Shown: positions 1 through 37,118, numbered from the stretch's first letter. The stretch is DNA of 64,000 bases from Macrostomum lignano (GCA_002269645.1 NIVC01001794.1:172790-236789), one strand, 5' to 3'. Notes: a model not told the origin generated them from the sequence alone. Made by a program: numbers and translations.

Positions 1-561
1 CAAAAAATTCTTTGTCTTATTTTTATCGGGGTACTAACTTATTATATTCGGAATAAAAGCGTAATAGCTGTCAGCTGCAATAATCTGATTTAAAAAGACA
101 AAAATAGTAGGTCCACGCCAAGACTTTCTCACCGCGGTTCATCCCGGCAGGCTGCAGGTTGGTCCAAATTTTAACACCGGAAAATCGAGTTGATGCAAAA
201 AGACAGGACTACGGGATTCTATAAGCAATGCAGATGCGCTTCTCTGTTGAATGCAGAACAGAGACCGGCGGTAAAGTAGCTATTTTGTTTTCCGCTCCAG
301 CTTTATCCCCAATGCCCGCATGATGGATTGGGGTGGAAGCGGCGAGAGGAAGGGGCTGCTAAACCGATCGATGAGGGAAGAATGGGAAGAATGGCTGGGA
401 TTGTTCAATCCTGCAGAGCCTCCAGTCTTGGGGGACGTGGGTCGCGCAATGCGCATCCATATTTACTTGTCCCAAAAAAACTCAGCGCTCAAACCCTCCG
501 TGCAATCGAGGGGCCATGGTGGATGAAAATGCAATTACTCACGGATGCAATTGCCGAGTGA

Positions 562-6557: not shown

Positions 6558-12978
<6,421 letters not shown>

Positions 12979-14149
12979 GAATGGAAGAGGCACAGCGGTG
13001 TATCAGATCCTCAGACAGATGGAAAACTTTGGGAAACTCCTGTGGCTTTAGCCAAGGGAACTCAGCATGGCCTTTTAGGGGGCTGAACTCTGCTCATATT
13101 TATAGAGAAAAATTCAGTCGTTATTCACAGGGATGTGAAAATTCATTTTGTTGAAAAATATGTTTTTAATTAACTATGAAAATGCCTTGTTTTCTTTCAC
13201 AAAGTGCTCAAAACATATTATAGCTTCTAGAATATTATAGTAAATAGTATTTTTTGGACAAGTCCTTTTCGCCAAATATTTTCGTGTTTTCATTGGATAT
13301 TAAAACTCGAAAAACATGGGCGATTGTTTCGATTGTTGCAGCCGAGTTTCTTATACGAGCTACAATAGGCACAGTTGCATCCTTTTTGTATAATTTTCGG
13401 CCTATTTCATAGCAGATAGTTCACTGGTGAACAGTAAATCAAACTACTGTTTGAAATGAATGCATGAAGTCATCAAAACCATCTGCTTTTTTAATTTTTG
13501 CAGCATCCTAAGCATTTTTAAGAATGACGCGTGCGTTTCTTCCAAATGAGTATTTTTAGACGCGAGCCACACTTACTTGCACTCGTGACAAAACATTCAC
13601 TGCTAGAGCCGGTACAGCGAGTTCGGCACTGCTACATTGTTGATACTGAATACACATTGCAGACTGCTGCCCCTGCAGTTCTTGCCTGTTTATGACAACA
13701 AACAGCTAGTCAACATTTTGATATTCACATTCGGTACCAACGCAGTTTCTATGCAGTATTCAGCAGTGTACAAAAGGGGCTTCACATTTTGATGCTATGA
13801 ATGTTAGCTAGCCAACAAATTTAAACAAACCTAAGCTGTAGAAAACCTAAATCGGATTAGCCACTGGGTCAGTTTCAACAAGCGCGACTCCTTTCATTCA
13901 CTCTTAGCCGATGTTGACTATCCTATGGGTCAAAATCGCATGCACGAAACTGGCAGAGTTGGCAAACTGTGAGAAAGATGAATAAAGGAGTGAGTGGGCA
14001 GAAGGCTGGTGGCAGAATTATTTTGCAGTCTTTTCTTGATGGTATCTGTTGACATCAATCTAAAAGTCTAATCATGAGAATATTAATCATGCAAAATACA
14101 TGTAAACTGTACATGTGCCAATGGAGTAGCACGGACGACATGGAGGTAC

Positions 14150-14480
14150 AAGAAGATAGCAATAGCGACGAAGTTCTTCTTCTCCCCGATGCAGCGTTAG
14201 GGGTCGCCGCGGTCGCCGTGCTGCCGTCGATGATGCTGTCCGCAACTGGTTGATAAGGACCTTCCGCTCTGCGGCTACGGCGCTCTGCGGCTACGGCGCT
14301 CTGCCGCTTCAGCGGCGCTGAGGGTCGTCGGGACGTCGACCTGGTCGAGGCAGACGGCGCTGGCGGAACTTGGTCCGCGCGTTCATTCCCGGCGACTCCA
14401 AAGTGCGCAGCGACCCAGATAAACCTGGGTGGGCGCCAGGTGGATAGGGGATGGCGCTCAGACAATGGCGAAGGGCCCGG
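14150..14480 (-). mobile_element. decayed non-LTR retrotransposon fragment with RNase H motif
   Basis: Minus-strand translation IWVAAHFGVAGNERADQ matches the WVxxHxGxxGNExAD RNase H motif, followed in another frame by KVLINQLRT, similar to the LINE QLRTGH motif. Confidence 0.6.
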
Positions 14481-16360
14481 TGTTGTGTTGAGAAAGTCAG
14501 ACTGACGTGAAAGACACGAGCTTAATCTCAATTTGGCATTCAGACTTGCATATTTATACTCCAGCCAGTGACAAATCGATATTGACAAACATATGCACAT
14601 AACTGTGTGTGTATGTACGCATGCAAACGCATAACGCAAGCCATCTACACAACATTCATTCTCCAACTTACAAGGAAAAATTGAAAACGAAAGGCTTGAA
14701 ATTCGAAAGTCCTTTGCAGTCATTACAATCCTTAAGTCACCACATTCCCATATCACTGCGGCGGAGCCCGACTCCTCGCATTCCCTCGAATCGCCGTGGG
14801 TGCTCGTTGATCCGGCAGCAGCTCTTCAGCCGACATCTGAAGGGGGGCCGGCGCGGGCCGCTGCACCCGCACGCAGCTGTCGACGTGCACCCGAAAGTCG
14901 TTGCTGAGGATCACTGTGGTGGCGCTCGCGATTCTCGAGATCTCCAGCGGCTCGGACAGCTAGCTACTCAGCTTGCCACGCGCGAACGGCCGCCTCAAGC
15001 GCACCCAGTCGCCGACCTTGAACGTCAGCGGTGACCTCCTGGTCGAGTTGAGCTTGCTCAAGACTCGCTGCTGCTTCTGCTAGTTTGTGCTGCGATGGCG
15101 TCCTTGGTTGCAGTGCCGTCAGTGGGGTACTGATTTTCCGGCCTGTCATCAGCTCCGCCGGTGACACCCCTGTCAGTGCGTGTGGGGTGGCCCAGCACAG
15201 CAGTGCCCTCACCGCGCCCTCGACTGCAGCGTTGCGTTGCGGTTGGTAGTGCGGTGACTGGCGGATGCCGCAGCGCTGGAGGAAGTCTTTGAAGTCACCG
15301 GACATGAACTGCGAGACGTCGTCCCCAGCGGCTGATCAACGTCGTCAGGGTGTCGATCACATCAGTTGTGGTCACTGTGGACATTCAGGCTGCTTTCGGC
15401 CACTTCGTACAGCACCAGAATGAAGCATCATGAGCTCGGGGCCGAATGCAGCTCCCCGAAGATATCGAGCTGAAGCTCCTTCCAAGGTCGCGTCGTCTGT
15501 CTCGCTGAGCAGGCAGGCCTCGCAGTGCCGCACGAACTCCTCGATTTGGCTGTCGATCTGCGGCCATCAGACCGAGTCCCGGCAGTGATGCTTCATTCTG
15601 TCGATGCAGTGCACCGTTCCTGAGCAGCCGTGCAGAATCTTACGTGGCACCTTCTGGAAGGCTGCCGGAGCGCTGTTGAGACCGAAATAAACCCGCTGGT
15701 ACCGATAGAAACCCTTCTCCGGAGAGCTAGAGCTGCAGATACGATGAGTTCAGATCTAGTTTTAAGAACACCGTCGAGCTCTTGAACTCTGTAGTCAGCT
15801 CCTCGAATGTCGGCAGAGGCTCAGGGACGCATATCAGATTCGAGATCCACTCGGATGCCTGGATCTCCCGTCCGCTAGAAGCTGATCGATCTTAGCTGGG
15901 ACCTTCTCCTTGAGGCTGAGCGGCGTCCGGCGGAGAGGCTGCGCCACTGGAGGCACTGCGGGGCTCACTCGGAGCCGGTGCTCGAACCCCCCCCCCCGAG
16001 TCCTCACGTCAACTGCTCGAAACTTTCTGGCAGCCAGGCCGGAAGCTGCTTGGTCTCATCCACGGCGCGCACCAGGTCGCCGTCCCGGTCCACAATTGGG
16101 AAGTTGAGATGCTGCATCAGATCTGTGCCCATGATGTCGGATCCCTGCTGCACTACTGCGAAGCAAAAGAACAGGATGCCAGGCAAAGCGCCTCATCAGC
16201 CAGCGGCATATCCCAGAATCTACCCGAGGTGGAAACAGACTGCCACTTGATTATTTGCCAGTGCTTGCAGACTGCATGGGCTACGTGAGCTCGGAGCTGT
16301 CCGCAAGTCAACAAAATGAATTCGCAAAGTCCAAAAAATTTTCTCACTGTTATTAGCATT
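14481..16360 (-). mobile_element. degenerate, internally deleted Ty3/Gypsy element with putative 3' LTR (14481-14744)
   Basis: Fragments: RT (PLPTFEELTTEFKSSTVFLKLDLNSSYLQL*), integrase zinc finger (WPQIDSQIEEFVRHCEAC) and core (FKDFLQRCGI...YQPQRNAAVE...TPHALTGVSPAELMTGRK). Purine run GGGAA precedes a TG...CA segment containing TATAAATA. Stops and frameshifts present. Confidence 0.8.
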
Positions 16361-18684
16361 GCCGTCTGTCAATAGATACCGGACATTCCCAGCTCCAATT
16401 GTTTGCTAACCAGCTGGTTGTGTTTGCACTGGAGCGGTCAGCTTGCGTGATCAATTGAGGCCTTCCCTGTCATTAAGCTTAGCCGCTCGAGACGATTAAC
16501 TATAGCCTTGTATAATATTTAACGAGGAACACTTCCAAACCAGCTCATAAAATCTATTAAATTTTAGAAATTGCTTCCATTTCCTACTAGTCACTACTTC
16601 TCTCAGTACTGAACAGAGCGAATTTCTACGAAGCCGTCGAGTTTTTGTCAAGAAGTGTGAAAGAGATCAAAACACAAATACAAGGCAGGCTTCAAGCTGT
16701 AACGCCTGCAGTAAACATGTTCACATAGTTATTCTGGAAATATATGAGATTCGTTTCATAATAATTTTAATATATCAATACAATGCTTTAAATCAAGATG
16801 ACTTCATAGAAAGTTAGAATATGAAGCCTTTTATTTAATCTATTTTCCCACTAAAGATATTGAAAAATACTGAGTAGGTGCACGCCTTACTTTTATAGAA
16901 GCACGCGGTCAAAAAGTCAAGAGCTGGAACTTAAAAGTACAGCTAAGCTGGTGCAGTTGTCGTGTTTGCAGAATCAATATAAACTAAGTCAAGAATCGGC
17001 TCGCAAGATGGAAAGAGTCGTGCAACAATTCAAATATTAGTACAGTAAGTTTCCGGAATCATATGCACTCAAGTTGAAAGAGATTGACTACAAAGTAATG
17101 TTGACTAGAAGAGATCATGCATAATCGATTACCACAGGTTATGCCACACACAGTCGGGGTTCGAAACGGCGTCATCATCTACCGGATTCAGAAATACGAA
17201 CAATATTGCGCTCAAATACAACTTCACAGAAGTTTTAGCGCTTCACGGACTTCGGAAGGCCTGGTGGAGGTTGTCATCAAGGAAGAGTAGATGCACATGC
17301 TAACTGCTGGTGTCAGGTCCAGTCTTTCTTGACTAGTGGAAATGCATGTAAACTTGCTCATTTTTGTGCACGATTTTTTCAAGCGTACTGTAAAACACGT
17401 TCCACAGATTTACTGCAGCAGCAAGCAATCTCAAACACAGTTTTCAGTCCAATTGTTTGGACAGCTTTCATGGCAACAGCACAGGGCGCGGTTCTGGAAC
17501 GCCGGACTCTCAGTTCATTTGATGGAGCCTGCGATGAATTCACATGGCAGTGGTGTAGGGTCCTTGCAACACCAATTAGTAGAACTGCTGGGGTTAGGTT
17601 ACCCACTGAGTACCTGAAGCTCTTGTCCCAATCGCCACTCCAGGGTTTTCTCTGCACTTTCAGAGCTCCTGCAGGCACTCGGGTTCTGCGTTTGTTTAAC
17701 TTGGGATTTTAGCTGAAATCCAAATCAAACAATTTTCAAGTAGCTGCATACGTAATTATGTATTGCAAATTCTACTCAAAATAGGGTTATTCGCAACTCC
17801 AAGACAGCCCTATCGACTATAGGTATCAGGTTCTGCTTTTAATTAAAGTAGCCTAACTGTTGAAGTTTTCGCGAGCACACCAAAAGTATTAAGGCTGGTG
17901 TGCAAATACAGAAGCAAATTTGCTTTCTGGAACTTCTCTCCCTTCTAGCAGCAAGTACGATGTTTCTAAAGTACAAGTTCATAGCCGCCTATCAAAAATC
18001 GGACTTGTTAGCAAACTAAACAAAGAGCTCTGTTAGCTCTTACCTGCCTGAAAATGCTTGCCTGCAATGAAACTAACTGGTTGAGTGCCGATAATTGCAT
18101 AAATATTAACAAATTGTGCACGACTATGCAAAGATTGCTGAGTCCATGCTTACCTCTATGCTCACCTTGTGGGAGCTAAGAGCTAAAGTGTAGAAAATAA
18201 TTTCTGCATTGTTTCAATGGACCATCAATGGAAGAGGGTCTTCTATTGGAACTTCTATTAAAGCTCTGTTTCACTTTGAAAGTCCCTATTCAAGACAGAT
18301 AAGTTTAACTTAGTGACATGTAGTTTGTTCACAGGGCCCTGGACACTGCCGCTATTAAGGCGACAAATTCATCATTCTGCTTGTTTCTGGTCTCCAAAAA
18401 ACTTTTAAAAGCGGCAATTGACAACATTGTAAAAGCAACCAAAGTCGGACCAAAAGCCCAATGCTTTGGGTGCTCTTCGAAGTTGATAAGAGGAGAGAGA
18501 GCATCTCAATAGCAATTTTATTCGCTAAAACTTAGTCCAAAAATACTAACAATGCCTATTAAGCCATTTAAAGCAAGCAGAATTTAGCCTTCAATAAAGT
18601 GTCTGTGATTTTGATGTGCTACGTCCTCTTACATGTATTCAATCTTTATTTTTTGTGTAAATCAATGAGTTTTATATTCATACA

Positions 18685-18907
18685 TTTAGCAGAGTCAACT
18701 ATTGCAATATTTGGCGGACGATAACAAAAACACGAGGGCTCAAAAGCCAGAATCAGTCAATATATATATTTTAATATTAGGCATGCACAAAGTACGTGCG
18801 TACATTACAATCGATAAATTAAAAGGCAACTTGAGCGTGCCCCCAACCCCCCAGCGCAGGCCAACCCCAAAACCGCAAATGCAAACTCTCAATATCAAGT
18901 CATCACA
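18685..18907 (-). repeat. 3' LTR
   Basis: Direct repeat of 22992-23215; preceded on the element strand by AAGTGCGAAGGGA (18908-18920, PPT-like). Confidence 0.97.
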
Positions 18908-19033
18908 TCCCTTCGCACTTAAGTATGAAAGTAAGATTAACAAAAATTAACACTATTAGTAATAATTAAAAAAAATATTGAAGCGAGCAACACAACTAAG
19001 GTACTAAAATCGAGTTCATCAAGAACAGTTACT

Positions 19034-22000
19034 TCAGCTGTAAGTCAGTCGCTCAGGTGCAGCGCACTTCCTCATCGAACGGCGAAGCTGCGGTATGGCG
19101 TCAGGCTCCGCCGCAGCCTCAGTAGCAACGCCGTCAGCAAAAACTTCGGATGCGCCCTTCGGCACCGCATCGCACTGCGGCACCGCTGCCGCTGGTACCG
19201 CTGGCTCGGTCGGAAGCTGACTGACCGCGGCCGGCTTGCGCACCTGGTCCACGTGCCTGTGTGCGTCTCTGCCGTCATCGAACCGGCACGTGAAGTCGGC
19301 CGCACCAGAACTGTCCGTGACTGTCGCCGGTCTCCAGCGTCCGTCTCTCGCGAAGTCTCGCGCCAGCACCGAGTCGCCGACATTAATGCGGCGGTCGTGC
19401 GCGTGGGCATCGTGCTGCTCCTTCTGCAGTGCCTGCTGGACGGCCACCCGGGCGGGCAGGTCAGGGCGGACTCGGTCGAGCAACGATTTCAGCCTCCGCC
19501 CCATCAGCAGCTCGCAGGGAGCCGTCCCGGTAGTCGCATGCGGCGTGACTCGGTACGTCAGGAGGAACCGGGAGACTCGCTCCTCCAGAGAGCCGCTTTG
19601 CTGCTTGGCCAGCGCACGCTTCAGAATCTGAACTGCTCGCTCTGCTTGGCCGTTGGACGCCGGGTGGTACGGAGCCGTGCGCACGTGCCGGATGCCGTTC
19701 TTGCTCAGGAATGTCTCCATCTCCGCGCTGACCAAGTTCGGACCGTTGTCGGAGACGATCACGTCCGGCAGACCGTGAGTTGCAAAGCTCGACCGCAGGT
19801 TCTCGATAGTCGCAGTCGACGACGTCGAAGGCATCACATGCACGTCCATCCACTTGGAGTGAGCGTCCACGACAACCAGCAACATCCGGCCCTGGACTGG
19901 CCCGGCGTAGTCAATGTGCAGGCGCGACCACGGCTTGTCCGGCCACGCCCACGGCTGCAGTGGAAACGGACCTGGCGACTTCTGCATCTCCTGGCACTCG
20001 GTGCACGCGGCGACCAGCCGCTCGATCGCCTCGTCCAGCTTGGGCCACCAGAAAACGCTTCGAGCCAGCGCCTTCATTCTCGTGGCGCCCTGGTGCCCCT
20101 GGTGCAGGCAGTGCAGCAGCGCCTCTCGACCGGCCTCGGGAACTACGACTCGGCAGCCCCAGAGCAGACAGCCGTCTTGGGTGCTCAGCTGGTCGGCTCG
20201 CGTGCAGTACGGCTGCAGCTCAGGCGGCGGCCGCTCTGGCCAGCAGCCGGTCTCAGTGAAACGCAGAACTCGGGACAAGTCCGGGTCTGTCCGAGTCCAC
20301 GTCCGGATGTGCCGAGCCGTCACCGGTCCCTCGTCCAGGAAGTCCATGAGTAGGACGACTTCAGCTGGAGTTGGCGCTTCCTTCGGCTTCTCCGGCAGCG
20401 GCAGCCGACTCAGCGCATCGGCTCGAAGCAGCGACTTGCCCGCTCGGTGGACCATGGAGTACTGGTAGCCGGCCAGGAGCAGCGCCCACCGCTGGATTCT
20501 GCCAGAAGCCAGTGCTGGTATCGGCTTGGACTGGGGCAGCAGACCGAGCAGCGGCTTGTGGTCGCTCACCAGCTTGAAGTCTCGCCCGAACAGGTACATG
20601 TGAAATTTTTTAACTCCGTAAATGACCGCGAGCGCCTCCTTCTTGAGCTGGGAGTATCGGGTCTCTGCTTCATGTAGCGTGCGAGAGGCGAAGGCGATCG
20701 GCCTATCGACTCCGTCGATTCGGTGGCTGATGACGGCGCCGATGCCATAAGGCGAGGCGTCGCACTCGAGCACCAGCGGCTTCTGACGGTCGAAATGCGC
20801 AAGCACCGGTGCCTGGCTGAGTAGCGACTTGCACCTGCGAAACGCCTCGTCCTGCACAGCGTCCCATCGCCAGGGGGCGCCCTTGTTCAGCAGCTGGTTC
20901 AGCGGCGCCAGTTCGGTTGACAGATTGGGCATGAACTTGCCGTAATAATTTACCAGCCCGAGGAAGCTGCGCAGCTGCGTCTGGTCGCGGGGCGGTGGCG
21001 CGTCCTGGATCGCCCGCACCTTGTCCTGGAGAGGGTGCAGCCCTTCGGCGTCGATTCGGTGCCCAAGGTAGCTGATGCTCTGCTGCATAAAGCTGCACTT
21101 ACTCAGGCCGCACCGGAGGCCGCTCTGCTGCAGTCGCCGAAGGACCTGCTCCAGCGTCTTCAGGTGGCTGTCATCATCCACGCCGGTAACCAGCAGGTCG
21201 TCAACAAAGCAGGTGACGTGGGGAATGCCCTGCAGGAGGCAGTCCATCTGGCGCTGGAAAATGCCGACAGCGGGAGCAACTCCGAACGGCAGTCTCGTGT
21301 ACCGCAGCAGCCCCTTGCTGGTGTTGATGGTGCAGAGTTCTTGCGAGGCTTCGTCCAGAGGTAGTTGCGAGTACGCTTGCGACAAGTCAAGCTTAGTGAA
21401 TTTCTTTCCGCCGGCCAGTTTCGCGAAGAGCTCCTCGATTCTCGGCACCGGGTACGTGTCGGGCTCGACGTCGAGGTTCACCGTTTGTTTAAAATCAGCG
21501 CATATGCGGACCGAGCCATCTGTCTTTAAAACGGGTACGATCGGAGACGCGTAGTCCGAGCTGCTCACCGGCTTCAGCACTCCCTGTTCGATCTCTTTTT
21601 CGAGTTGCGCCTCGACCTTCTCCTTCAGCGCAAGCGGGACGTTCCTGGCTTTGAAAAACCTCGGCCGCGCTGAGGCTTTCAGCTGCAGCCGAACCGCGGG
21701 CCCCGTGTACCGACCAAGGCCCGGCTCGAAGACTTCGGCGTACTTGTCCAGCAGGCTCTTGAGTCCTGGTTGCCCTGACGGATGCTGTTGCACCTGCTTG
21801 ATGTCTCGCCAGTCCAGCGGAAGTTCGGCCAGCCAGTCGCGGCCAACCAGATTCGAGCCGGCACCATCGATCACGAGCAGCGGCAGCACCTTGCTGGCGA
21901 TCTCGGTCTGCGCGCGAACTCGAAGTTGGCCGAGAACGGGCACCAGCTCTCCGGAGTACTTCCGCAGCTGCGTGTTGACTCTCTCGAGTCTGGGACGCCC

Positions 22001-26178: not shown

Positions 26179-28021
26179 TGTAGCTGTGATACTTGTAGTT
26201 TCTATAGTTCTTGTAGTGCTTTCCTTCAAATTCCATGTGGTTACTGGAAGGTTTGGTAGGTAGTGTTCAATATATACGATCCACGTCCTCACCCAGAATT
26301 CCTCTGATTTGCTAGCGCTAATCTTCACTTCATGCTGTTTGAAGCTGATTTCATTGGTGAGGAACTGTTTCCATGACATCAATTTCTGTTTGCGAGGAAG
26401 TTTTTCTAGTGGATTGAATTCATTAATCGCCCGGAAGCACTTTATTATTGTTTCGCTAATCCATCAACTTCCTTTTGGTTCTACAGAGCTGCATGCACTG
26501 TAATCAAAGAATTATGTTCTGTTCTCCGTCCCTTTACTCTAATGTCGGAAGAATAAAATACTTCAGAGCATTGTTTGCGCTGACACGCGGCAGCTTCATA
26601 GCAATGGAGGACGACTCTTAGAAATTTCGTAATTCATTTTGTTGTATCTTTCAGTATAGCCGAATGCAATGCAATCATCAATACTGTATCGACATATGAG
26701 ACAATCGTGCGTAGACATCGATAATCAAATCAAGTTAATAAAGGGGATCCCTCAGAAAGAGCGCTTTGCTCTCCGCTATGCCTGTTTGTCTGTCCGTCGG
26801 TCTGAAGGTCGCGTATGTGCGGAGAGCAGACATATATTATACATGTAAAATGTATGCTCCAATGACCACTTGCAGTAAAACAGGACGTAAAACTAAAAGA
26901 TGGTGTAATTTTTGGAGGCAAATTTCCTGGACAGAATACACTGCGGAGATAGGAAAAGTTTTTTTTTCATCGCAAAATCAATGAATCTTGCATTTGATCC
27001 AGGACAGTGAATTGTTTACCATTATTTTAATTTAGCACACACAGCTTGCTGTTGTATTTTATGTTGTATTTAATTGTTTATACAGTGAACTTGTTTCATT
27101 TTCATACTTTTATTTTATTTTATATAAAACGCAAAGTTGTTAATTACTACTAACAAGTGGCATCAGGTGAACTTTTTGTTTTGTTCCTTTAATATATTCA
27201 AGTCAAGTCAAATCAAGGCTAGGGGCCTGCCCAATTATGCCAATTGTGAGCATTTACAAATTTTGGGCTTAAAAGTAATAAGGAATGAAAGTTTTACTGC
27301 ACAACTATATAAAATAAAGTACGTACAACAGAGTAACATGTTCTGCATGCTATAATTAAAAGACTGCATGGTAATCTTCGATATTTTTGAGATGAGGCTG
27401 TTTTCCCATCTCCTTAGAGTATTTTTCAGGAAATTGGCCTCCAAAAATGCACGATCTTTGAGTATACATACATGTACGTCCTGGTTGTCCTATAGTGGTT
27501 CTTGGTATATTCGTGAAGAAACGATAGAAAACTATGTACAACCTTATTAGTTAGAAAACAGCCGAAACAACCATAAGTGCTAGTTATGCACCGTCTGCAA
27601 ACACACTTGGACATCCAACTGTCATCCGGTTTTGGTTAAGCATTGTTTATAGTAGCTCAAGTCATATAATGTACGTATACGTACGTGTACCAGATCTTAA
27701 CAATCGAGCTACCGTTTACTTTTTTATAAAGTTAAAATCCTCTCCCCCGCTTGGTGTTGCAAGTAACGACCTATCTTTTAACTAATTGCAAAAAAAAATA
27801 CCAGGACCACTGCATATAGCAGAACGTAAAACTCATAATGCAGTAAAGTAAGTCCTTGAACAAAGTTATCTGGCAGTGTTGAGTTAACTGCATCGTCTTT
27901 TTTAACCGGCAATGTGTAAAGACAAACAAAGTTGTTTTCCTAAAATTTTCAGAAGTTTAGGTATATAAAATAACTACATCTTTTAGTTGTAAAGTGTATT
28001 TTTTTATACTAAAACTTGAAA

Positions 28022-28061
28022 GTAAACAATTTTTGTGATCTATTTGACGTTGCATAGCAAT
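28022..28061 (+). promoter_or_regulatory. forkhead site plus X-box upstream of IQCA1
   Basis: GTAAACA (28022-28028) and GTTGCATAGCAAT (28049-28061), about 90 bp above the ATG at 28147. Confidence 0.55.
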
Positions 28062-28146
28062 ATTGCTGTGCACAGCTTAGATTTCAAAGAAATCAGAACA
28101 TTTTTTGACGAATTAAGGCCATCGTCCATCGACAGTATTTGCGTCG

Positions 28147-31100
28147 ATGTCTCACATGTAAGTTGTTCTTGAAATTTATTATAAAATTTTCCTAAGATGA
28201 CAGCATTTGTTTTAGATCGCTTATTTTTACAGATAATGTTCTAATATTAACTCAACTACTTAACATGGGCAGCCTAATTTTGTCAGTTTTTACCAAAATC
28301 ATGAGAGGAAATGAAAGATATCACCGAGAATATAATTAAGTTTATTAATTTTTACGTACTTAAGAAACTTAGATAATCATATGATATTTCACTACCTTTT
28401 TTTAGTAATGTTTTTCTCATAGCTATTGTAATTATAATTACTTATTGAAATATTGTGTTTTAATCAAATAATTGGTACCATGATAAAATGATACGAAACT
28501 GATTCTTTAACAAAGGCGTTTTTTTTAATTTAAACTCATTGTCAATCAAGCTAGTAAAACCATGAACTATAATGACTATCACTCATTTCATTTAGAAAAC
28601 TTTTCACTTCAATGACAATTCTTGAACTTTGAAGCAGAATAAAGCACAAGGAGAGCTTAATTTTTGTAACAGACCCGAGTTTTTGTAACAAATCAAACTA
28701 TAATGTTCAAATATTCAGTTAAATATTATACAGTAACTTTATTTGCAGTTGTACATAGGAGATTACTACTTTTCCTAAAAAGGGAATTTTTTGTTATTTT
28801 CATTCATGTTAAATAATTTTGTAAAGAGATGAGGCTCTAAATATATGCAAAAATATTAAATTTTTATTTCACATATTTAGTATTCATTACTAAATATATA
28901 CATCTCAATACTAAAAATATCCATATACTAAAATGGTTTGTATGGTTCTTTAATTTTATATTCAGCATATTCTTCTTCTATTTACATATAAACAGAACCT
29001 ACAATAAGGAGTGGCGGGAGGCCCAGCAGGCCCTCGCTGACCTCTTCGAAAATGAGAAGCCACCGGAAGCTCAAAAACCTGAAAAGGTGAGATGGCACGC
29101 TGAATTTCCTTCTATTATAGTCTAAATAAATCACCAATTCCAATGCTTCTTATTCATATTTTTCTTCAGGACAAAGTGGCGTTCTTCCAGTTCCTCGCCA
29201 CCATGTACATCAAGTACATCCAGATCCTCCGCAAGCTGGAGGCCTGCTACGACCAGATTGTTCATCCGCAGAAGCGCCTGGTGCTGCGAAACGTCCTCGA
29301 CGGTGTCCTTGGCCGACTGCTCGAGCTCAAGCAGGAGATGGTGGACCTCGAGTGCCTGGAGTACCACTTCTTTGACGATATTTTGTCGGACCTGAAGCTA
29401 ACGCCGGTGAGGCTGTTGGGTTTAACGGTTGCAGGCGAAAAATTGGGCTGGTAGCCATTGGGCCGTTTTATTGGTTTCTGAGTTATTAGAACAGCATAAC
29501 CCCAAACTCTCAAAGCTGGTATTTAAAACTGGTATTTAACGTCACTCGTCTTCCAGAATGACGTCGAGATGCCGATTCCAAAGTACTTTGTGCTTGAGCA
29601 GGAGAAGAATCTTCGAGCTCGACAGCAGCTGCTTGGCCAAATTCTGGCCAAGATGGGGCCCAGCGAGAAGGAGGAGAAGGCGGCCGAGGTGAAGATGTCG
29701 CTGGAGGAGGCCATCCGCTTGGTGCAGGTGCACGAGCGCGCCAGGCAGGGCCGGCTGCGCGCCAAGTTCATGCGGGAGATCCGCGAGCAGGAGGAGAAGT
29801 CGCGGCAGGACGCCACCAGAGGCGCGCCGACACTTGACCCCGTGGACGCGGCCGTGCGGATTCAGAAGGTGCGCGGGGTCGGATGGAGCGGGGAGAGGAT
29901 TAATCTGTTATTTACGAGTGTATCAGGTGATGATGGTATCTAACATGTGACACAATCCCGTCTAACAGGTGACACGATCCTGTCTAACAGGTGACAAAAT
30001 CCTGTCTAACAGGTGACACAATCCTGTCTAACAGGTGACAAAATCCTGTTTAACAGGTGACAAAATCCTGTCTAACAGGTGACACAATCCTGGCTAACAG
30101 GTGACAAAATCCTGGCTAACAGGTGACAAAATCCTGTCTAACAGGTGACAAAATCCTGTCTAACAGGTGACACAATCCTGGCTAACAGGTGACAAAATCA
30201 TGTTTAACAGGTGACAAAATCCTGTCTAACAGGTGACAAAATCCTGTTTAACAGGTGACACAATCCTGGCTAACAGGTGACACAATCCTGGCTAACAGGT
30301 GACACAATCCTGGCTAACAGGTATCACAGTCCTGTTCAACAGTCAAAACTCCTCTCTAAGACAATGACACAACCGAATAAAAACGTCTTATATTTCTAAA
30401 AGTGCATGCTAGAGATTAAACAAGCGCTAATATATTTATCCGCCCAATTTTCCCAAAAAAAAATCGAACACCCGATTGCAGCACTGGAAAGGTTTTTGTA
30501 CCAGAAAATTTTCCCGGCGGGAACGCGACGAAGAGATGGTGTTCATCGGCATGGTGAATTCCGGCAGCCTGTTTCTCTAGATGTTGTGTTGTACTTTTAT
30601 TCTTAGTCCATTTTTCACTGCTTGTAGTGTTTTTTATGTTGTGCATCTGTTTTGTTATTATTTCATTTAATTAATGTTGTGCTCCCACTTTACTCAACAC
30701 TGACAGCTGTGGCGCGGAGTGATGATTCGTAGAAAAGTCACTCGACTCCGAGATGACGAATTCGTCTGGCTTGGAATGGTAAAGTATTGGCACGGGACTC
30801 TGATTGAATAGCAGCTTGTTGGCTAAAACTGCGCTTTAATCCGTGGTGATTGATTTTCTAACTGGTCTCCTGATTGCTAGGATTCTGCATGAGTTGCTTA
30901 TGCGGCGCGAACAATAACGCACTATATATATGAAGCGATAACGCGCCTCTCGCTCTCCCCGGTAAAGCATCCGTGTGTGCGTGTGTGTTCTCCGAGGTCA
31001 GCGGAATGGGTCGACTGTCGCCTTACACTCAATTAACGAACTGTAACTTTAATAAACTATTATAAATATTGGTAAAGAACCGCTATAATTTGATACTCAC

Positions 31101-34100
31101 TTCGTAATGAAGGCTCTTAACAGCAACATTCACTCATTGATTGTCAATCTTCATTTAACGCTTTTCCAATACAACTTGTACAGCTTTTCTCAGCCTAAGT
31201 AAAACATCAAAATCTCATCAAACAATGTCACTTTCCCGCAGAACCCACCAGCTCAGTTCCTGACCGCCAAGAAGTCAACAGCACAGGTGCATGCTCTGAA
31301 GGTGCAGGACATGCGCCGGGTCACCCAGTCGATGCACAGGCAGGAGTACGACCAGGCGCTCGTCACCATCAAGGAGAAGCTGCGCGAGACTGAAGGCCCC
31401 GACATGAAGGAGACAATGCAGGACCAGATCCGGCAGTGGTTTCTGGAGTGCCGAGATGCCACGGGCAAATTTCCAGACTACCCTGACGGAGAGGAGGGCA
31501 GCGCGGAGCTGTTCAAGCAGAAGAGCGTGGCGGAGCTGGAGCGCGAGCTCAAGGAGAAGGTGCGGGACTCCGCTTCTGCTGCTTGCTTTTTTGTCCGGGA
31601 AACTTGGCACAGTCTCCTGCTCCTGTTTGATGTTCGATTTAACACTTGTCTCCATTTGTTCTCAATCTAAACCCATTATCAAGGAGGAAGGCGGCGGCAA
31701 AGGCAAGGGCGGCAAGAAAGGCAAAAAGGGCGGAAAAAGCGGCGGCAAGAAGGGCAAAGACGCCAAAGGCAAGAAAGGCGGCAAGGGCAAGAAAGGCAAA
31801 AAGGACGACGTAAGTTTCAGTGGATGTTTTAAATACGAGCGTACTGGAATTTCTATTTTGCTTCCTGTGCTGTTTGGCTTCCCTGTCTGTTAGTCGGTAG
31901 GATTTCTTTGTGTGGCATGTGGGGTGGGGGTTTGTGGGGTAGGGGTTTGTGGGGTAGGGGTTTGTGGGGTAGGGGCTTTTAGAGTGGGGGTTGTGGGGTT
32001 GGGTTTTGTGGGGTGTGGGTTTGTGGGGTGAGGGTTTGTGAGGTGGGGGTTTTTGGGGTGAGGGTTTGTGGGGTGGGGGTTTGTGGGGTGAGGGTTTGTG
32101 GGGTGGGTTTGTGGGGTGTGGGGTTGTGGGGTGAGGATTTGTGGGGTGAGGGTTTGTGGGGTGGGGTTTAGTCTTTAGGTGAGGGTTTGTGGGGTGGGGG
32201 TTTGTGGGGTGGGGGTTTGTAGGGTGAGGGTTTGTGGGGTGAGGGTTTGTGGGGTAGGGGTTTGTGGGGGAAGGCGTTTGTGGGGTAGGGGTTAGTGGGG
32301 TGGGAGTTTGTAGGGTGGTGGTTTGTGGGGCATCGTTTTTGGTCGCAGTTGCTCGTACTTATTCTTAGTTTGTGGGTTGGCTAAGAATATTTGAACTATT
32401 TGACCTTTCTTGCTCATAAAAATCCACAGGACGATGACGAAGGCCTAAAGATGAAGGAGTCGAAATTCACGGGCGATATCGGCAGGGCTATGCAGGAGTA
32501 CGAGAGTAAGTGCATTGGCACTCGCCGATAGAATTCGTTTTTTATAACGCCGTTTTTTATAACAAAAAATCTAAGTTTTTTATTTCAATTCACCACATGC
32601 AGGCATCTGGAAGCTGAGAGACGAGTCGGACAATTTCCAGCAGAAGCACGACTCCGAACTCATCAAGGAGGCCAAGCGGGTTGAGGTTGAACGGGAGATC
32701 CGTCAGCAAGTTGACGAGCTGATGCGCCAGGAGCTGCAGAACCTCAAGGTGGCCATCGACAAGGAGAAAGTTCGCAAAGGCAAAAAGTCCGGCAAGAAGA
32801 AGAAGGGCAAGAAGGGTGAGCGCGAGAAAAGATTTACATTCGCGCCAATTTTCTTTGTTAAAACGGTTCCGTATTTCAGTTTTCTAAGAAAATCTTAGCG
32901 CACTTTTTCGAATTCTGATTCCAGGAAAGAAAGGCAAGAAGGGTAAATGACTGCTCGCTAACAGTTTTGCACTCTGTTGTTAGTCTCATGTACTTTTAGC
33001 CTCTCATACACTTTAAGTGTAAATTACGCGCGGACTTTTCAATTTTCTTAGATATCCAATCAACGGTCAATAAATTTGCATTATTTTCAGGCAAGAAGGG
33101 TAAAAAAGGAAAGAAAGGTACAAATATGTAGACACATGTTCGACTCGTTTTTTTCCGCATTCTGATCACAAAATTTCTGTGTTAGTCTTTAGAAGATATT
33201 TTGAGTCGTAGTATATCTTATCAAAGTGTATTGTTTATGCAATTTAATGCTAAAACATGCTATCTATAGCTTTAGAAGATATCTAACAAAATGTTTATAA
33301 AACACACATGCAGTCAGGATACGCATGCGTTCCAATCAAAGTCAGTAGATGCCGAAACTTTATAAAGCAAGCAAGTTAGAGCTGAAAATTATCAACTTAT
33401 CTAACCGAAATTACCTAAAAATAAAGTTTCCTAGAAAAAAATTGATTTACATGTATTCGAATTTTAAATGATTAACAGGTAAGAAGTCTGGCAAGAAGGG
33501 CAAAAAGGGCAAGAAGGAGAAGGACCTGACACCCGACTCAACTATTGAGGAGCTGTTCGAGGAGCTCGTGATGAATGGCATTATCAAGAAGGTGAGCACC
33601 GAGCTTCTTTTGCCAGTGTTCTGATGTTCATCTTCTTATGTACGCATTTGCATGTAACATTTCCATGTAAAACTAGTGAATTCGTCATTCTCTTCACATT
33701 CTGATGCACTTCCTCGTGTACACATCCTCATGTACACATTATCATGTACCCATCCTCATGTACACATCCTCACGTACACATCATTATGTACCCATCCGCA
33801 TGTACACATCCTCATGTACACATCCTCACGTACACATCCTCACGTACACATCCTCACGTACACATCCTCATGCAGCACGTCCTCATGTACACATCCTCGT
33901 GTACGCATCCTCATTTACACATCATCATGTACCATCCTCATGTACAAATCCTCGTGTACACATCCTCATGTACACATCCTCATGTACACATCCTCACGTA
34001 CACATCCTCATGCAGCACGTCCTCATGTACGCGTCCTCATGTACGCATCCCCATGTACCCATCCTCACGTACACATCTTCATGTATACAAATGTACACAT

Positions 34101-36041
34101 ACTCACGTAGACATTCTAATGTGCTCACTCTCGATGGACTCTGCTTCCCCAGGTGCCCAAGGTCAGCATGGCGGACTACGAAGGCGAGTACAACTACTTG
34201 GGCACCACTCTGAAGCAGGCCAACTTGGAACCGATGCCATCCTTAGCGGACGTGAGGCGCACCGTGTCAGAGCTGGCCTGCCTGCCCATGGGCTCCGAGG
34301 TGGTGCACAAGAGTGCGCCTCTCGTTAAAAGCCTCTTACTCGCTGGGCCGTCCGGTATCGGCAAGAAGATGCTGGTGCACGCCATCTGCACGGAAACCGG
34401 AGCAAATCTGTTCGACCTGTCGGCTACCAACTTGGCGGGAAAATATCCTGGCAAGGACGGCCTGCGGAGGCTGATGCACCTCATCTTCAAGGTAGGCACT
34501 TTTTTAGCTCTCTTCTACTATATTTTATTAAGAACTAATTTGACCGATAAGTATCGAAAACTAATTTGACTAATATGTATCGAAAACTAATTTAACCGAT
34601 ATGTATCAAAAACTAATTTCACCGATATGTATCGAAACTAATTTTGCCGATATGTATCGAAAACTATTTCGACAGATAAGTATTCACAAGTGATAGTGAA
34701 TCAATAATATCTTCAATTCCGACAGGTGGGCCGAGCCTTGCAGCCAAGCGTCTTCCTAATAGACGACTGCGACAAGATGTTCAAGAAGAAGATTCCCAAG
34801 AGCGACACCGTGAGTTTTTTAGTATTTTATTTTTTGCTAAATATTCCGCAAGAAATGCGTCGATTCTACTTAAAGTAAAATGTAAAATATATTATGTAGA
34901 ATTTTACGTTCTCTACACAGGATTCAGAGTCGATAAAAATCCAGTAAAAATATGTACTGCTAATGGCATTTGTGAGGGTATGAACGAATTCCTGGAGCAA
35001 CTTCTCACTTGTCGTCACGGAAAAAAACAAAAAAATATTTTGGCAGATGAAGTCACCAACTGTTTTTACAATTTTTCAATGTCACGTTTCCTAAGAGATG
35101 TTTTATTTGCGCTGCCATTAACTTCGACAATATTCGTAAATTAACCGAAGACTTTCCAATTAATCCTCAGTCCGACCCCAAGCGTCTGAAGAAGGAGCTG
35201 CCGAAGGCCATGAAGAATGTCAAGGTCGACGATCGGCTTCTGCTGGTTGGCTGCTCGCGTTCGCCCTGGGAGGCCGAAGTGAAACCGTTCTGCAGCCTCT
35301 ACCAGCGCATCCTGCTCATCCCCAGGCCGGATTATGCGTCCAGGCACCGTGAGTGCTGCTGGCTGGGGTTTACAGGAGCTTAGAGACACCAACCGGACAT
35401 TGTCGGGATCAGATCTATTAGGAGAGACAACAAACCAGATGAAATTTTTTGGGATGGATCTATGGGAGAGACACCAACCCGGATGTACATTGTCCGGGTG
35501 AGATCTATGGGGAGAGACACCAACCCGGATGTACATTGTCCGGGTGAGATCTATGGGGAGAGACACCAACCCGGATGTACATTGTCGGGATGAGATCTAT
35601 GGGGAGAGATGTAATGCACTGTTGCACCGATTAGAGATTTCGCGCACTCCAAACGCACTCCCCGCAGTGATCTGGCGCCGTCTCCTAGCCAAGCACAATG
35701 GCATCATCACCGGCGCCCTTGATGTGAGCACCCTGGCCAAGGTGACGGACGGCAACACGATGGGGCAGATCAAGCTGTGCTGCGAGGAGATTCTCACCGA
35801 GCGCCGTCTGGCCCAGATGGCCAAGCGGCCGCTGACCACCCAGGAGTTCATCCCGGTCATCGCCCGCCGCGAGTTCGTCCACTCCGAGGAGGAGGAGGCC
35901 TTCAAGAAGTGGTACGACAGGACGCCCCTCGGCAAGAAGCGGGCGAAGGCGATCGCAGCAGACGAGGAGGAGGCCCAGGGCGGCGGCAAGGGCAAGGGAA
36001 AGGGCAAAGGAAAGGGCGGCAAGAAGGGCAAGAAGAAGTGA
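28147..36041 (+). CDS. IQCA1: IQ motif and AAA-domain protein 1 / dynein regulatory complex subunit 11
   Basis: About 17 exons. MSHITYNKEW (28147-28157 + 28996...), [43 protein letters not shown], Walker [11 protein letters not shown], Walker [10 protein letters not shown]-terminal [12 protein letters not shown]...GKKGKKK; collinear with human IQCA1. Confidence 0.96.
29945..30322. repeat. 22-bp intronic minisatellite (TAACAGGTGACA[A/C]AATCCTGTC)
   Basis: About 17 tandem copies. Confidence 0.96.
31915..32325. repeat. G-rich ~15-bp intronic minisatellite (GGGGTGAGGGTTTGT)
   Basis: Degenerate tandem array of G-runs. Confidence 0.93.
33715..34105. repeat. 14-bp intronic minisatellite (TACACATCCTCATG)
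   Basis: Degenerate tandem array; explains the His/Thr-rich ORFs. Confidence 0.93.
35395..35630. repeat. ~46-bp intronic tandem repeat
   Basis: GAGATCTATGGGGAGAGACACCAACCCGGATGTACATTGTCCGGGT, about 4-5 copies. Confidence 0.9.
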
Positions 36042-36379
36042 GCAGAACCGATCCATTGAGAGCCAAGAAAGTCTCACTCAGAGCTCGCTTGCTGAGCAAA
36101 GTTGTACTGAGTACGCCGATTTTTATTACTTCTGCTTGCATGTTTTTGTTTCACTCCGCTATCGTCCATTCGTGTTTTAAATTTATCTGCAACAGCAAAC
36201 AAGCTGGTGACTGTGAGCAAGTTTGTTCGTTTTTAAATTTATTGAAGATTTAATAAAAAATAACAGAAACACGAAAGTTTTTCCGGCTTTCTAATGCGAA
36301 CTATAAACACAATCAATTTGTTTTCTTGTTGCAGACGGCCTTTAAAACTTTTTTACCACCATCCCTAACATTACTAACC

Positions 36380-37118
36380 TAACAGCCCCCTCCCCAACAG
36401 CCCCCTCCTCAACAGCCCCCTCCCCAACAGCCCCCTCCCCAACAGCCCCCTCCTCAACAGCCCCCTCCCCAATAGCCCCCTCCCCAACAGCCCCCTCCTC
36501 AACAGCCCCCTCCCCAACAGCCCCCTCCCCAACAGCCCCCTCCCCAACAGCCCCCTCCCCAACAGCCTCCTCCCCAACAGCCCCCTCCCCATCAGCCCCC
36601 TCCCCAACAGCTCCCTCCCCAACAGCCCCCTCCCCAACAACCTCCTCCCCAACAGCCCCCTCCCCAACAGCCCCTCCCCAACAGCTCCCTCCCCAACAGC
36701 CCCCTCCCCAACAGCCCCCTCCTCAACAGCCCCCTCCCCAACAGCCCCCTCCCCAACAGCCCCCTCCTCAACAGCCCCTCCCCAATAGCCCCCTCCCCAA
36801 CAGCCCCCTCCTCAACAGCCCCCTCCCCAACAGCCCCTCCCCAACAGCCCCTCCCCAACAGCCTCCTCCCCAACAGCCTCCTCCCCAACAGCCCCCTCCC
36901 CATCAGCCCCCTCCCCAACAGCTCCCTCCCCAACAGCCCCCTCCCCAACAACCTCCTCCCCAACAGCCCCTCCCCAACAGCTCCCTCCCCAACAGCCCCC
37001 TCCCCAACAGCCCCTCCCCAACAGCTCCCTCCCCAACAGCCTCCTCCCCAACAGCCTCCTCCCCAACAGCCCCCTCCCCAACAGCCCCCTCCCCAACAAC
37101 CTCCTCCCCAACAACCTC
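36380..37118. repeat. C-rich 15-bp minisatellite (CCCCAACAGCCCCCT)
   Basis: About 50 copies just downstream of the IQCA1 3' end. Confidence 0.97.

Follow-up and report, generated by a model that had tools for sequence, protein, structure and literature searches.

Two homologous exon versions of the second IQ motif in a flatworm DRC11 gene: a candidate alternative exon in Macrostomum lignano

The DRC11 gene and its two IQ exons

The stretch of DNA considered here (the window) comprises 64,000 nt from the flatworm Macrostomum lignano (GCA_002269645.1 NIVC01001794.1:172790-236789, one strand), with positions counted from its first letter. It carries a gene for DRC11/IQCA1, one of the subunits of the N-DRC (nexin-dynein regulatory complex), in which the exon that codes for most of the second IQ motif is present twice in tandem. 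The two copies, termed exon A and exon B, are homologous and equally long, and exon A is a candidate alternative to exon B.

The identity of the gene is supported by several kinds of evidence. Residues 5-347 (343 residues) of its product match DRC11 chains in the PDB (with E-values of 2e-102 for 9fqr_Ok, 1e-100 for 8j07_11, 1e-59 for 8glv_Ea and 1e-45 for 8th8_L for this N-terminal match), and the best full-length protein matches carry the name DRC11/IQCA1 together with the domains PF27107 and PF00004. Precomputed Pfam assignments for the protein P0121 likewise place DRC11_N (PF27107) at the N-terminus, followed by AAA (PF00004), and the protein P0241 falls within P0121's 90% cluster. The first-pass annotation of this DNA had named the gene IQCA1, in agreement with these structural, domain and protein-name matches; it had also stated that human IQCA1 has a single such segment, as PDB chain 8j07_11 shows. 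We built a model of 16 exons from the sequence, including two added micro-exons, and the 11-nt first coding exon (28147-28157; ATG TCT CAC AT, donor gtaagt) was found afterwards. When spliced with exon B, the model is identical residue for residue to P0241, which is PAA63993.1 (BOX15_Mlig006146g2, Macrostomum lignano; 847 residues), a match that requires exon B to be in and both added micro-exons to be out. As the exon-B model translates exactly to PAA63993.1, the source genome is that of M. lignano.

Two related genes serve for comparison. A second copy of the gene, g1 (P0121), lies on contig NIVC01001456.1 and is ~99% identical to the copy in the window, g2; a paralogue, Mlig032994 (P0114, P0122 and P0151), is 68% identical and lies on NIVC01002018.1 (gene at ~10501-20982). 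The latter contig was also considered as the orthologue of another species and rejected as such, being a paralogue in the same M. lignano genome. The coding sequence in the window and the features around the exon pair are the following:

28147-36041, plus strand: DRC11/IQCA1 coding sequence (Mlig006146g2), ATG to TGA, identified by its translation (P0241/PAA63993.1) and by Pfam and PDB matches
29557-29868, plus strand: exon 4, encoding the first IQ-like helix, with a terminal AAVRIQK that makes up the initial third of IQ motif 2; donor gtgcgc
29939-30322, no strand assigned: 22-nt minisatellite of 17.5 copies, occupying the greater part of the intron upstream of A; its length differs between g1 and g2
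30482-30553, plus strand: exon A, 72 nt, phase 0-0, gattgcag/CAC...ATG/gtgaat; ancestral (non-flatworm) type
30554-30706, plus strand: A-B intron, 153 nt, 35% G+C, GT..AG
30707-30778, plus strand: exon B, 72 nt, phase 0-0, ctgacag/CTG...ATG/gtaaag; flatworm type
31242-31559, plus strand: exon 6, starting cccgcag/AACCCACC, that is, NPPAQF (first codon AAC); common acceptor for either IQ exon

All junctions among exon 4, exons A and B, and exon 6 are in phase 0. The second IQ motif is split at the end of exon 4, which reads ...GCGGCCGTGCGGATTCAGAAG/gtgcgc at 29868 and encodes ...AAVRIQK: exon 4 supplies IQK, and A or B then supplies xW[KR]GxxxR and the helix that runs to F/W-[IL]-G-M. Each of the two 72-nt exons accordingly codes for the distal two-thirds of the motif (residues 3-26 of the second IQ motif). 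A and B share 10 of 24 residues and 32 of 72 nt (BLOSUM62 score 52), and so differ at 14 residue positions and 40 nt. We slid a frame of 24 codons along the sequence and scored each step against a set of orthologous segments; over the 1.4 kb between the flanking exons it reached 136 and 130 at exactly A and B, with a next best score of 8, and in ~90 kb of four other loci the same scan gave a background of 29 or less. Because the scores far exceed this background, a chance origin of the likeness is ruled out, and A and B are true tandem duplicates of one exon. Translation, junctions and scan thus bear out the initial description of two homologous 72-nt phase-0 exons, each with its own AG and GT, and the junction 30778-31242 that had been listed with it is the one used in the exon-B model that equals P0241 exactly. 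Elsewhere the segment is single: one copy is present in all 17 aligned orthologues and in each of the ~170 distinct segments surveyed.

Age of the exon types and constraint on exon A

The two exons have different affinities. Exon A resembles exons from outside the flatworms, sharing 18/24 residues with that of Ciona and 17/24 with that of the snail Candidula, and among 152 non-flatworm segments 113 are closer to A and 14 closer to B. Exon B resembles the exons of parasitic flatworms: the single exon of Clonorchis (LWRGVLARRQVYKLRHEELVWLGM) shares 16/24 residues with B and 9/24 with A, and all 11 trematodes are closer to B than to A by BLOSUM score. A DRC11 segment on a genomic contig from the Logan collection (SRR22388065) is similarly closer to B (16/24) than to A (7/24). 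Position 21 is the most telling, being Phe in 168 of 170 non-flatworm segments and Trp in none; Trp21 is shared by B, every trematode, Echinococcus and the Logan contig, and both A and its counterpart in the paralogue (A') have Phe. Since A is non-flatworm-like and B is trematode- and cestode-like with a Trp21 confined to flatworms, the A and B types are probably old and must then have long coexisted. The duplication is probably older than the split between Macrostomorpha and Neodermata, such that the parasites would have kept B, the M. lignano paralogue A, and the gene in the window both; a segment of 24 residues has limited phylogenetic power for such a reconstruction.

It could instead be that B arose recently from A in the Macrostomum lineage, that its likeness to the neodermatan exon is convergent, and that the pair is young. 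The segment is indeed single in the paralogue and in the four neodermatan or other loci examined, and so short a segment offers little phylogenetic leverage to contradict this. However, A and B differ at 40/72 nt, compared with 17/72 for A and A'; the 16 residues that B shares with either the Clonorchis or the Logan segment stand against nine and seven for A; and a switch from Phe to Trp at position 21, which requires two nucleotide substitutions, occurs in none of the non-flatworm segments. We therefore regard a recent origin of B as rather doubtful.

No hidden second copy turned up in Clonorchis, Schistosoma rodhaini, Echinococcus granulosus or the M. lignano paralogue when first the flanking introns and then the genes along their full length were searched. 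Neodermatans were the only group that a further protein search added, with no planarian, polyclad or other macrostomorph DRC11 among them. Two of the loci compared have peculiarities of their own. The Logan contig (2156 nt) has introns of ~70 nt, and its single B-like segment (VWRRFMISRRVTRLREDELMWLGM) is fused to the neighbouring exons with no intron between them. The single IQ exon of E. granulosus (2725-2798 in its locus) is followed by a GC donor instead of GT; the E. granulosus protein P0244 lacks the WLGM that ends the segment, and the E. multilocularis model P0254 has it. The missing WLGM in P0244 is probably an annotation error that results from the GC donor.

The paralogue allows the constraint on exon A to be assessed, as its single IQ exon, A' (NIVC01002018.1, 12350-12421; cag/.../gta), is of the A type. 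It differs from A at 17 of 72 nt; 18 of 24 residues are identical, seven of these 18 with a different codon. By the method of Nei and Gojobori (NG86), the proportions of nonsynonymous (pN) and synonymous (pS) differences are 0.121 and 0.756, to be compared with 0.159 and 0.645 for the 714 aligned codons of the rest of the paralogue pair. With silent sites saturated and replacements rare, both lineages have preserved their A-type exon as coding sequence. Of the six residues that differ, four have in A the state that is commoner among the 170 outgroup segments; in particular, Arg15 (found in 159 of these 170) is kept in A and is Cys in A'. A and B both retain the invariant or near-invariant W2, G4, R15, E18, G23 and M24. 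Exon A thus appears to be under purifying selection and to have had a coding role through almost its entire history.

How exon A may be used

All three database proteins of the gene (P0121, P0241 and P0242) read ..IQK-LWRG..WLGM-NPP.. across the region, that is, they contain B only; we take them to stem from separate annotations of two assemblies, one behind the GenBank PAA entries and the other behind the UniProt entries derived from WormBase ParaSite. Exon B is the recorded default, and exon A is a conserved coding exon that is unannotated and missing from the Mlig006146 models. In its structure, the pair corresponds to a mutually exclusive one: the exons are homologous, lie next to each other in tandem, agree in length and phase, and have separate splice sites. 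Upstream of the acceptor of A the sequence is purine-rich (ccaaaaaaaaatcgaacacccgattgcag), and the donors of both A (gtgaat) and B (gtaaag) are without G at +5; these traits would suit regulated exons but are no proof of regulation.

What an exchange of A and B would do can be gauged from the IQ motif itself. We scored both versions with the Pfam IQ profile (PF00612; cut-off 20.3 bits, consensus [FILV]Qxxx[RK]Gxxx[RK]). The B context scores 22.5 and 25.2 bits, above the cut-off, and the A context is borderline, with 18.1 bits for a context of 94 residues and 20.7 bits for a peptide of 29 residues. Differences between A and B fall at position 6 (K/R), positions 8-10 (FCT/VMI), positions 12-14 (KFS/RKV) and in the acidic tail. 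The first-pass annotation had set a canonical against a variant IQ motif; the sequences do differ, but the opposition was overstated, as both fit IQxxx[RK]GxxxR and their scores are 18-21 bits for A and 22-25 bits for B. Published structures place calmodulin/DRC8 on the IQ motifs of DRC11. The helical hairpin of DRC11 binds two DRC8 in Tetrahymena and one in human (10.1101/2023.05.31.543107), and in Chlamydomonas the assembly of DRC8 depends on DRC11 (10.1101/684316). An exchange of the exons would thus be expected to alter the face that binds a calmodulin-like light chain. Epidermal cilia and sperm had been offered as an example of cilia types between which such a switch might operate; because Macrostomum sperm are without a flagellum (10.1101/2021.03.28.437366), this contrast is impossible in Macrostomum, and the candidate contrasts would instead lie among epidermal, protonephridial, sensory or gut cilia.

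Two other accounts of exon A have to be weighed. One is that A is a recently retired relic: exon 4 would always be spliced to B, and A would be intact, unused and not yet decayed. Such a history would agree with the skipping of A in every recorded protein of the gene, with the purine-rich sequence before its acceptor and a donor (gtgaat) without G at +5, and with the possibility that the paralogue's A-type exon has made A redundant. We nevertheless consider it unlikely. With silent sites saturated, the pN of 0.12 between A and A' matches the low level in the remainder of the gene; of the A-type pair, A is the more conserved copy; and neither its reading frame nor either splice site nor any invariant residue has been disrupted. 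Moreover, an age of B in keeping with its flatworm affinities would mean that A has persisted next to B over a very long period, which would need selection.

The other account, which we hold to be somewhat less probable still, is that A is a cassette added to B, yielding a helix longer by 24 residues with a second IQ-like site at tandem-IQ spacing and room for an extra light chain. A and B together are in frame, the 153-nt intron between them can be spliced, and a phmmer search with the A+B peptide returned multi-IQ proteins as its best matches, with 5-17 matched stretches each; in addition, the number of DRC8 on DRC11 varies, with two in Tetrahymena and one in human. But no DRC11-like representative among the 1.84 billion proteins covered by that search spans both copies, and every one of the ~170 orthologous segments has a single copy. 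If A and B were joined, B would be preceded by FIGM instead of IQK, so that the second motif starts with 'IG' (Gly for the Gln of 'IQ') and its IQ core is lost, although B is conserved as an IQ-type sequence. For the whole protein, the addition of B to A raises the Pfam IQ score from 18.1 to no more than 23.3 bits, and a single stretch clears the cut-off; both copies end in F/W-[IL]-G-M, which adjoins xPP in all orthologues.

The reading that we favour over these, and to which we give a little more than even credence, is that A serves as an alternative exon absent from the annotation, most likely in place of B, the two having arisen by an ancient tandem duplication within the second IQ motif of DRC11. 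Several observations weigh against it. One is that nothing found in the sequence forces exclusivity. Steric hindrance, for which donor and branch point should lie less than ~50 nt apart, does not apply to an A-B intron of 153 nt, whose likeliest branch site (as read from the sequence) is ~15 nt upstream of the acceptor of B, in a gene that splices introns of 83 and 97 nt. A frame shift with nonsense-mediated decay would not act either, with exons of 72 nt each and with A+B and skipped forms both in frame; nor would an incompatibility of U2 and U12 sites (/[AG]TATCCTT donor), the donors being gtgcgc, gtgaat and gtaaag and the acceptors all ..cag, of U2 type. As for docking and selector sequences, an inverted-repeat search gave only short arms with 72-90% complementarity; the best duplex between segments, joining the upstream with the downstream intron, was marginal, with z=-2.7 (1 of 100 shuffles, in 10 comparisons), and the only other copy is ~99.5% identical here.

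Further points concern the records and the comparisons between copies. Isoforms with A only, with A+B or with neither exon are absent from an exact look-up among ~15 billion proteins, and two word-indexed homology searches with the window sequence, as well as cluster listings, yielded no exon-A fragment. The missing exon-A proteins are weak evidence because the collection seems to be without M. lignano RNA-seq assemblies, as even B-containing fragments from such sources did not appear. Literature searches (for IQCA1 with mutually exclusive splicing, and for the Mlig gene identifiers) found nothing relevant. A' is itself mishandled in all three paralogue models (P0151 skips it, and P0114 and P0122 run into the intron), so that the only IQ exon of the paralogue is missing from all Mlig032994 models. 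A neutral A lineage would have gained ~0.7 substitutions per site, and by a rough estimate the observed pN permits neutrality for at most ~10-15% of the time since the paralogue split; the use of A may have been lost within that last interval. The comparison between g1 and g2, finally, is uninformative on the constraint of A, because the 0/72 differences in A and 0/72 in B are found in a tract (28000-31045) which, introns included, is only ~0.5% diverged.

Even so, alternative use remains the natural reading of a B-only isoform on record beside an A that has been coding for nearly all its history. Taking replacement of B and addition to B together, we infer strongly, and judge quite probable, that A is used alternatively in some form, of which strict mutual exclusion would be the more likely. 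In the proposed mechanism, one of the two M. lignano DRC11 paralogues would retain both copies as coding exons. The default transcript would join IQK, B and NPP, and A would replace B to give IQK, A and NPP in a smaller share of transcripts or in certain types of ciliated cell. The swap would change the surface offered to a calmodulin-like light chain (DRC8 or calmodulin) and leave the remaining protein untouched. The present-day splicing of A into mRNA, its exclusion of B and an effect of the swap on light-chain or Ca2+ behaviour are the parts of this reading that we infer. A bolder and more tentative proposal is that the pair is an exon switch dating from early rhabditophoran flatworms, of which Macrostomum would have kept both members and trematodes and cestodes only B, and which might be cell-type-specific, for example between epidermal locomotory and protonephridial or sensory cilia.

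Other features of the gene, and related systems

The exons of the annotated isoform are distributed as follows:

Exons 1-7, plus strand: 28147-28157, 28996-29086, 29170-29406, 29557-29868, 30707-30778, 31242-31559, 31684-31809
Exons 8-14, plus strand: 32430-32505, 32603-32815, 33479-33591, 34153-34491, 34726-34809, 35171-35348, 35668-36041

The two micro-exons of our initial model, at 32925-32942 (18 nt) and 33091-33117 (27 nt), are unannotated candidates that lie within the intron between the exons ending at 32815 and starting at 33479. Both have ag/../gt flanks and phase 1-1, encode Lys/Gly repeats of the GKKGKK type, and would extend a lysine-rich loop thought to contact the neighbouring doublet; each has a single, synonymous difference between g1 and g2 (AAA/AAG), and neither is in any of the database proteins. 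A tandem NAGNAG acceptor (caAGgAG/, 31682-31686) stands at the start of the lysine-rich exon; its first AG is used in the annotated protein, and use of the second would remove one Glu. Minisatellites occupy five introns and the 3' flank (29939-30322, 31918-32330, 33707-34089, 34533-34683, 35397-35609 and 36381-37113), with units of 14-46 nt in up to 49 copies and copy numbers that vary between g1 and g2. Downstream of ~31045, the introns of the two copies are 4-6% diverged (window 31046-36100 compared with NIVC01001456.1), and there is an 87-nt indel at 30967. The step in divergence at ~31045 looks like the edge of a gene-conversion or recombination tract between g1 and g2.

As it stands, the locus is a well-founded candidate, as judged from its sequence, and not a demonstrated switch. 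DRC11 and its light chain DRC8 form the proximal lobe of the nexin link, which contacts the neighbouring doublet and the inner-arm dyneins, and two natural versions of a light-chain-binding helix in a flatworm amenable to transgenesis and RNA interference would offer a clean way to probe the IQ site across cilia. Should a cell-type switch prove true, it would be the first described case of splice-level tuning of an N-DRC subunit. Independently of this, the annotation calls for correction, as exon A is missing from the Mlig006146 models and the only IQ exon from those of the paralogue. The locus also adds a case in which one lineage has apparently retained both members of an exon pair over a very long span, and parasitic flatworms have come down to a single copy.

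The general class to which the pair would belong, in which tandem exon duplication gives rise to mutually exclusive homologous exons, was reportedly described by Kondrashov and Koonin in 2001 and by Letunic et al. in 2002. Like the members of that class, A and B are adjacent, homologous exons of 72 nt each, in the same phase and with their own splice sites, and orthologues as well as the recorded product have just one copy; unlike them, they are known from sequence, with no known enforcing mechanism evident, whereas the class is defined by exclusive inclusion. With the DRC11 of other animals and protists (8j07 chain 11, 9fqr, 8glv and 8th8), the M. lignano protein shares DRC11_N and AAA domains and two IQ-like helices, with E-values near 1e-100 to the two metazoan chains (8j07_11 and 9fqr_Ok); where these others have a single IQ-2 segment, M. 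lignano encodes two exon versions within one gene and has an A-only paralogue besides. A functional parallel is found in exons 37a and 37b (EFa and EFb) of CaV2.1, which are mutually exclusive and tune Ca2+/calmodulin regulation. In both systems short homologous exons are exchanged at a calmodulin-regulatory module; the CaV2.1 pair, however, belongs to an ion channel, lies beside the IQ domain and is functionally validated, whereas the M. lignano pair belongs to an axonemal complex, lies inside the IQ motif and is predicted. The vertebrate gene pair IQCA1 and IQCA1L, finally, provides two versions of DRC11 for different cells by whole-gene duplication, and M. lignano, by comparison, has both a gene duplicate (Mlig032994, of A type only) and an exon duplicate.

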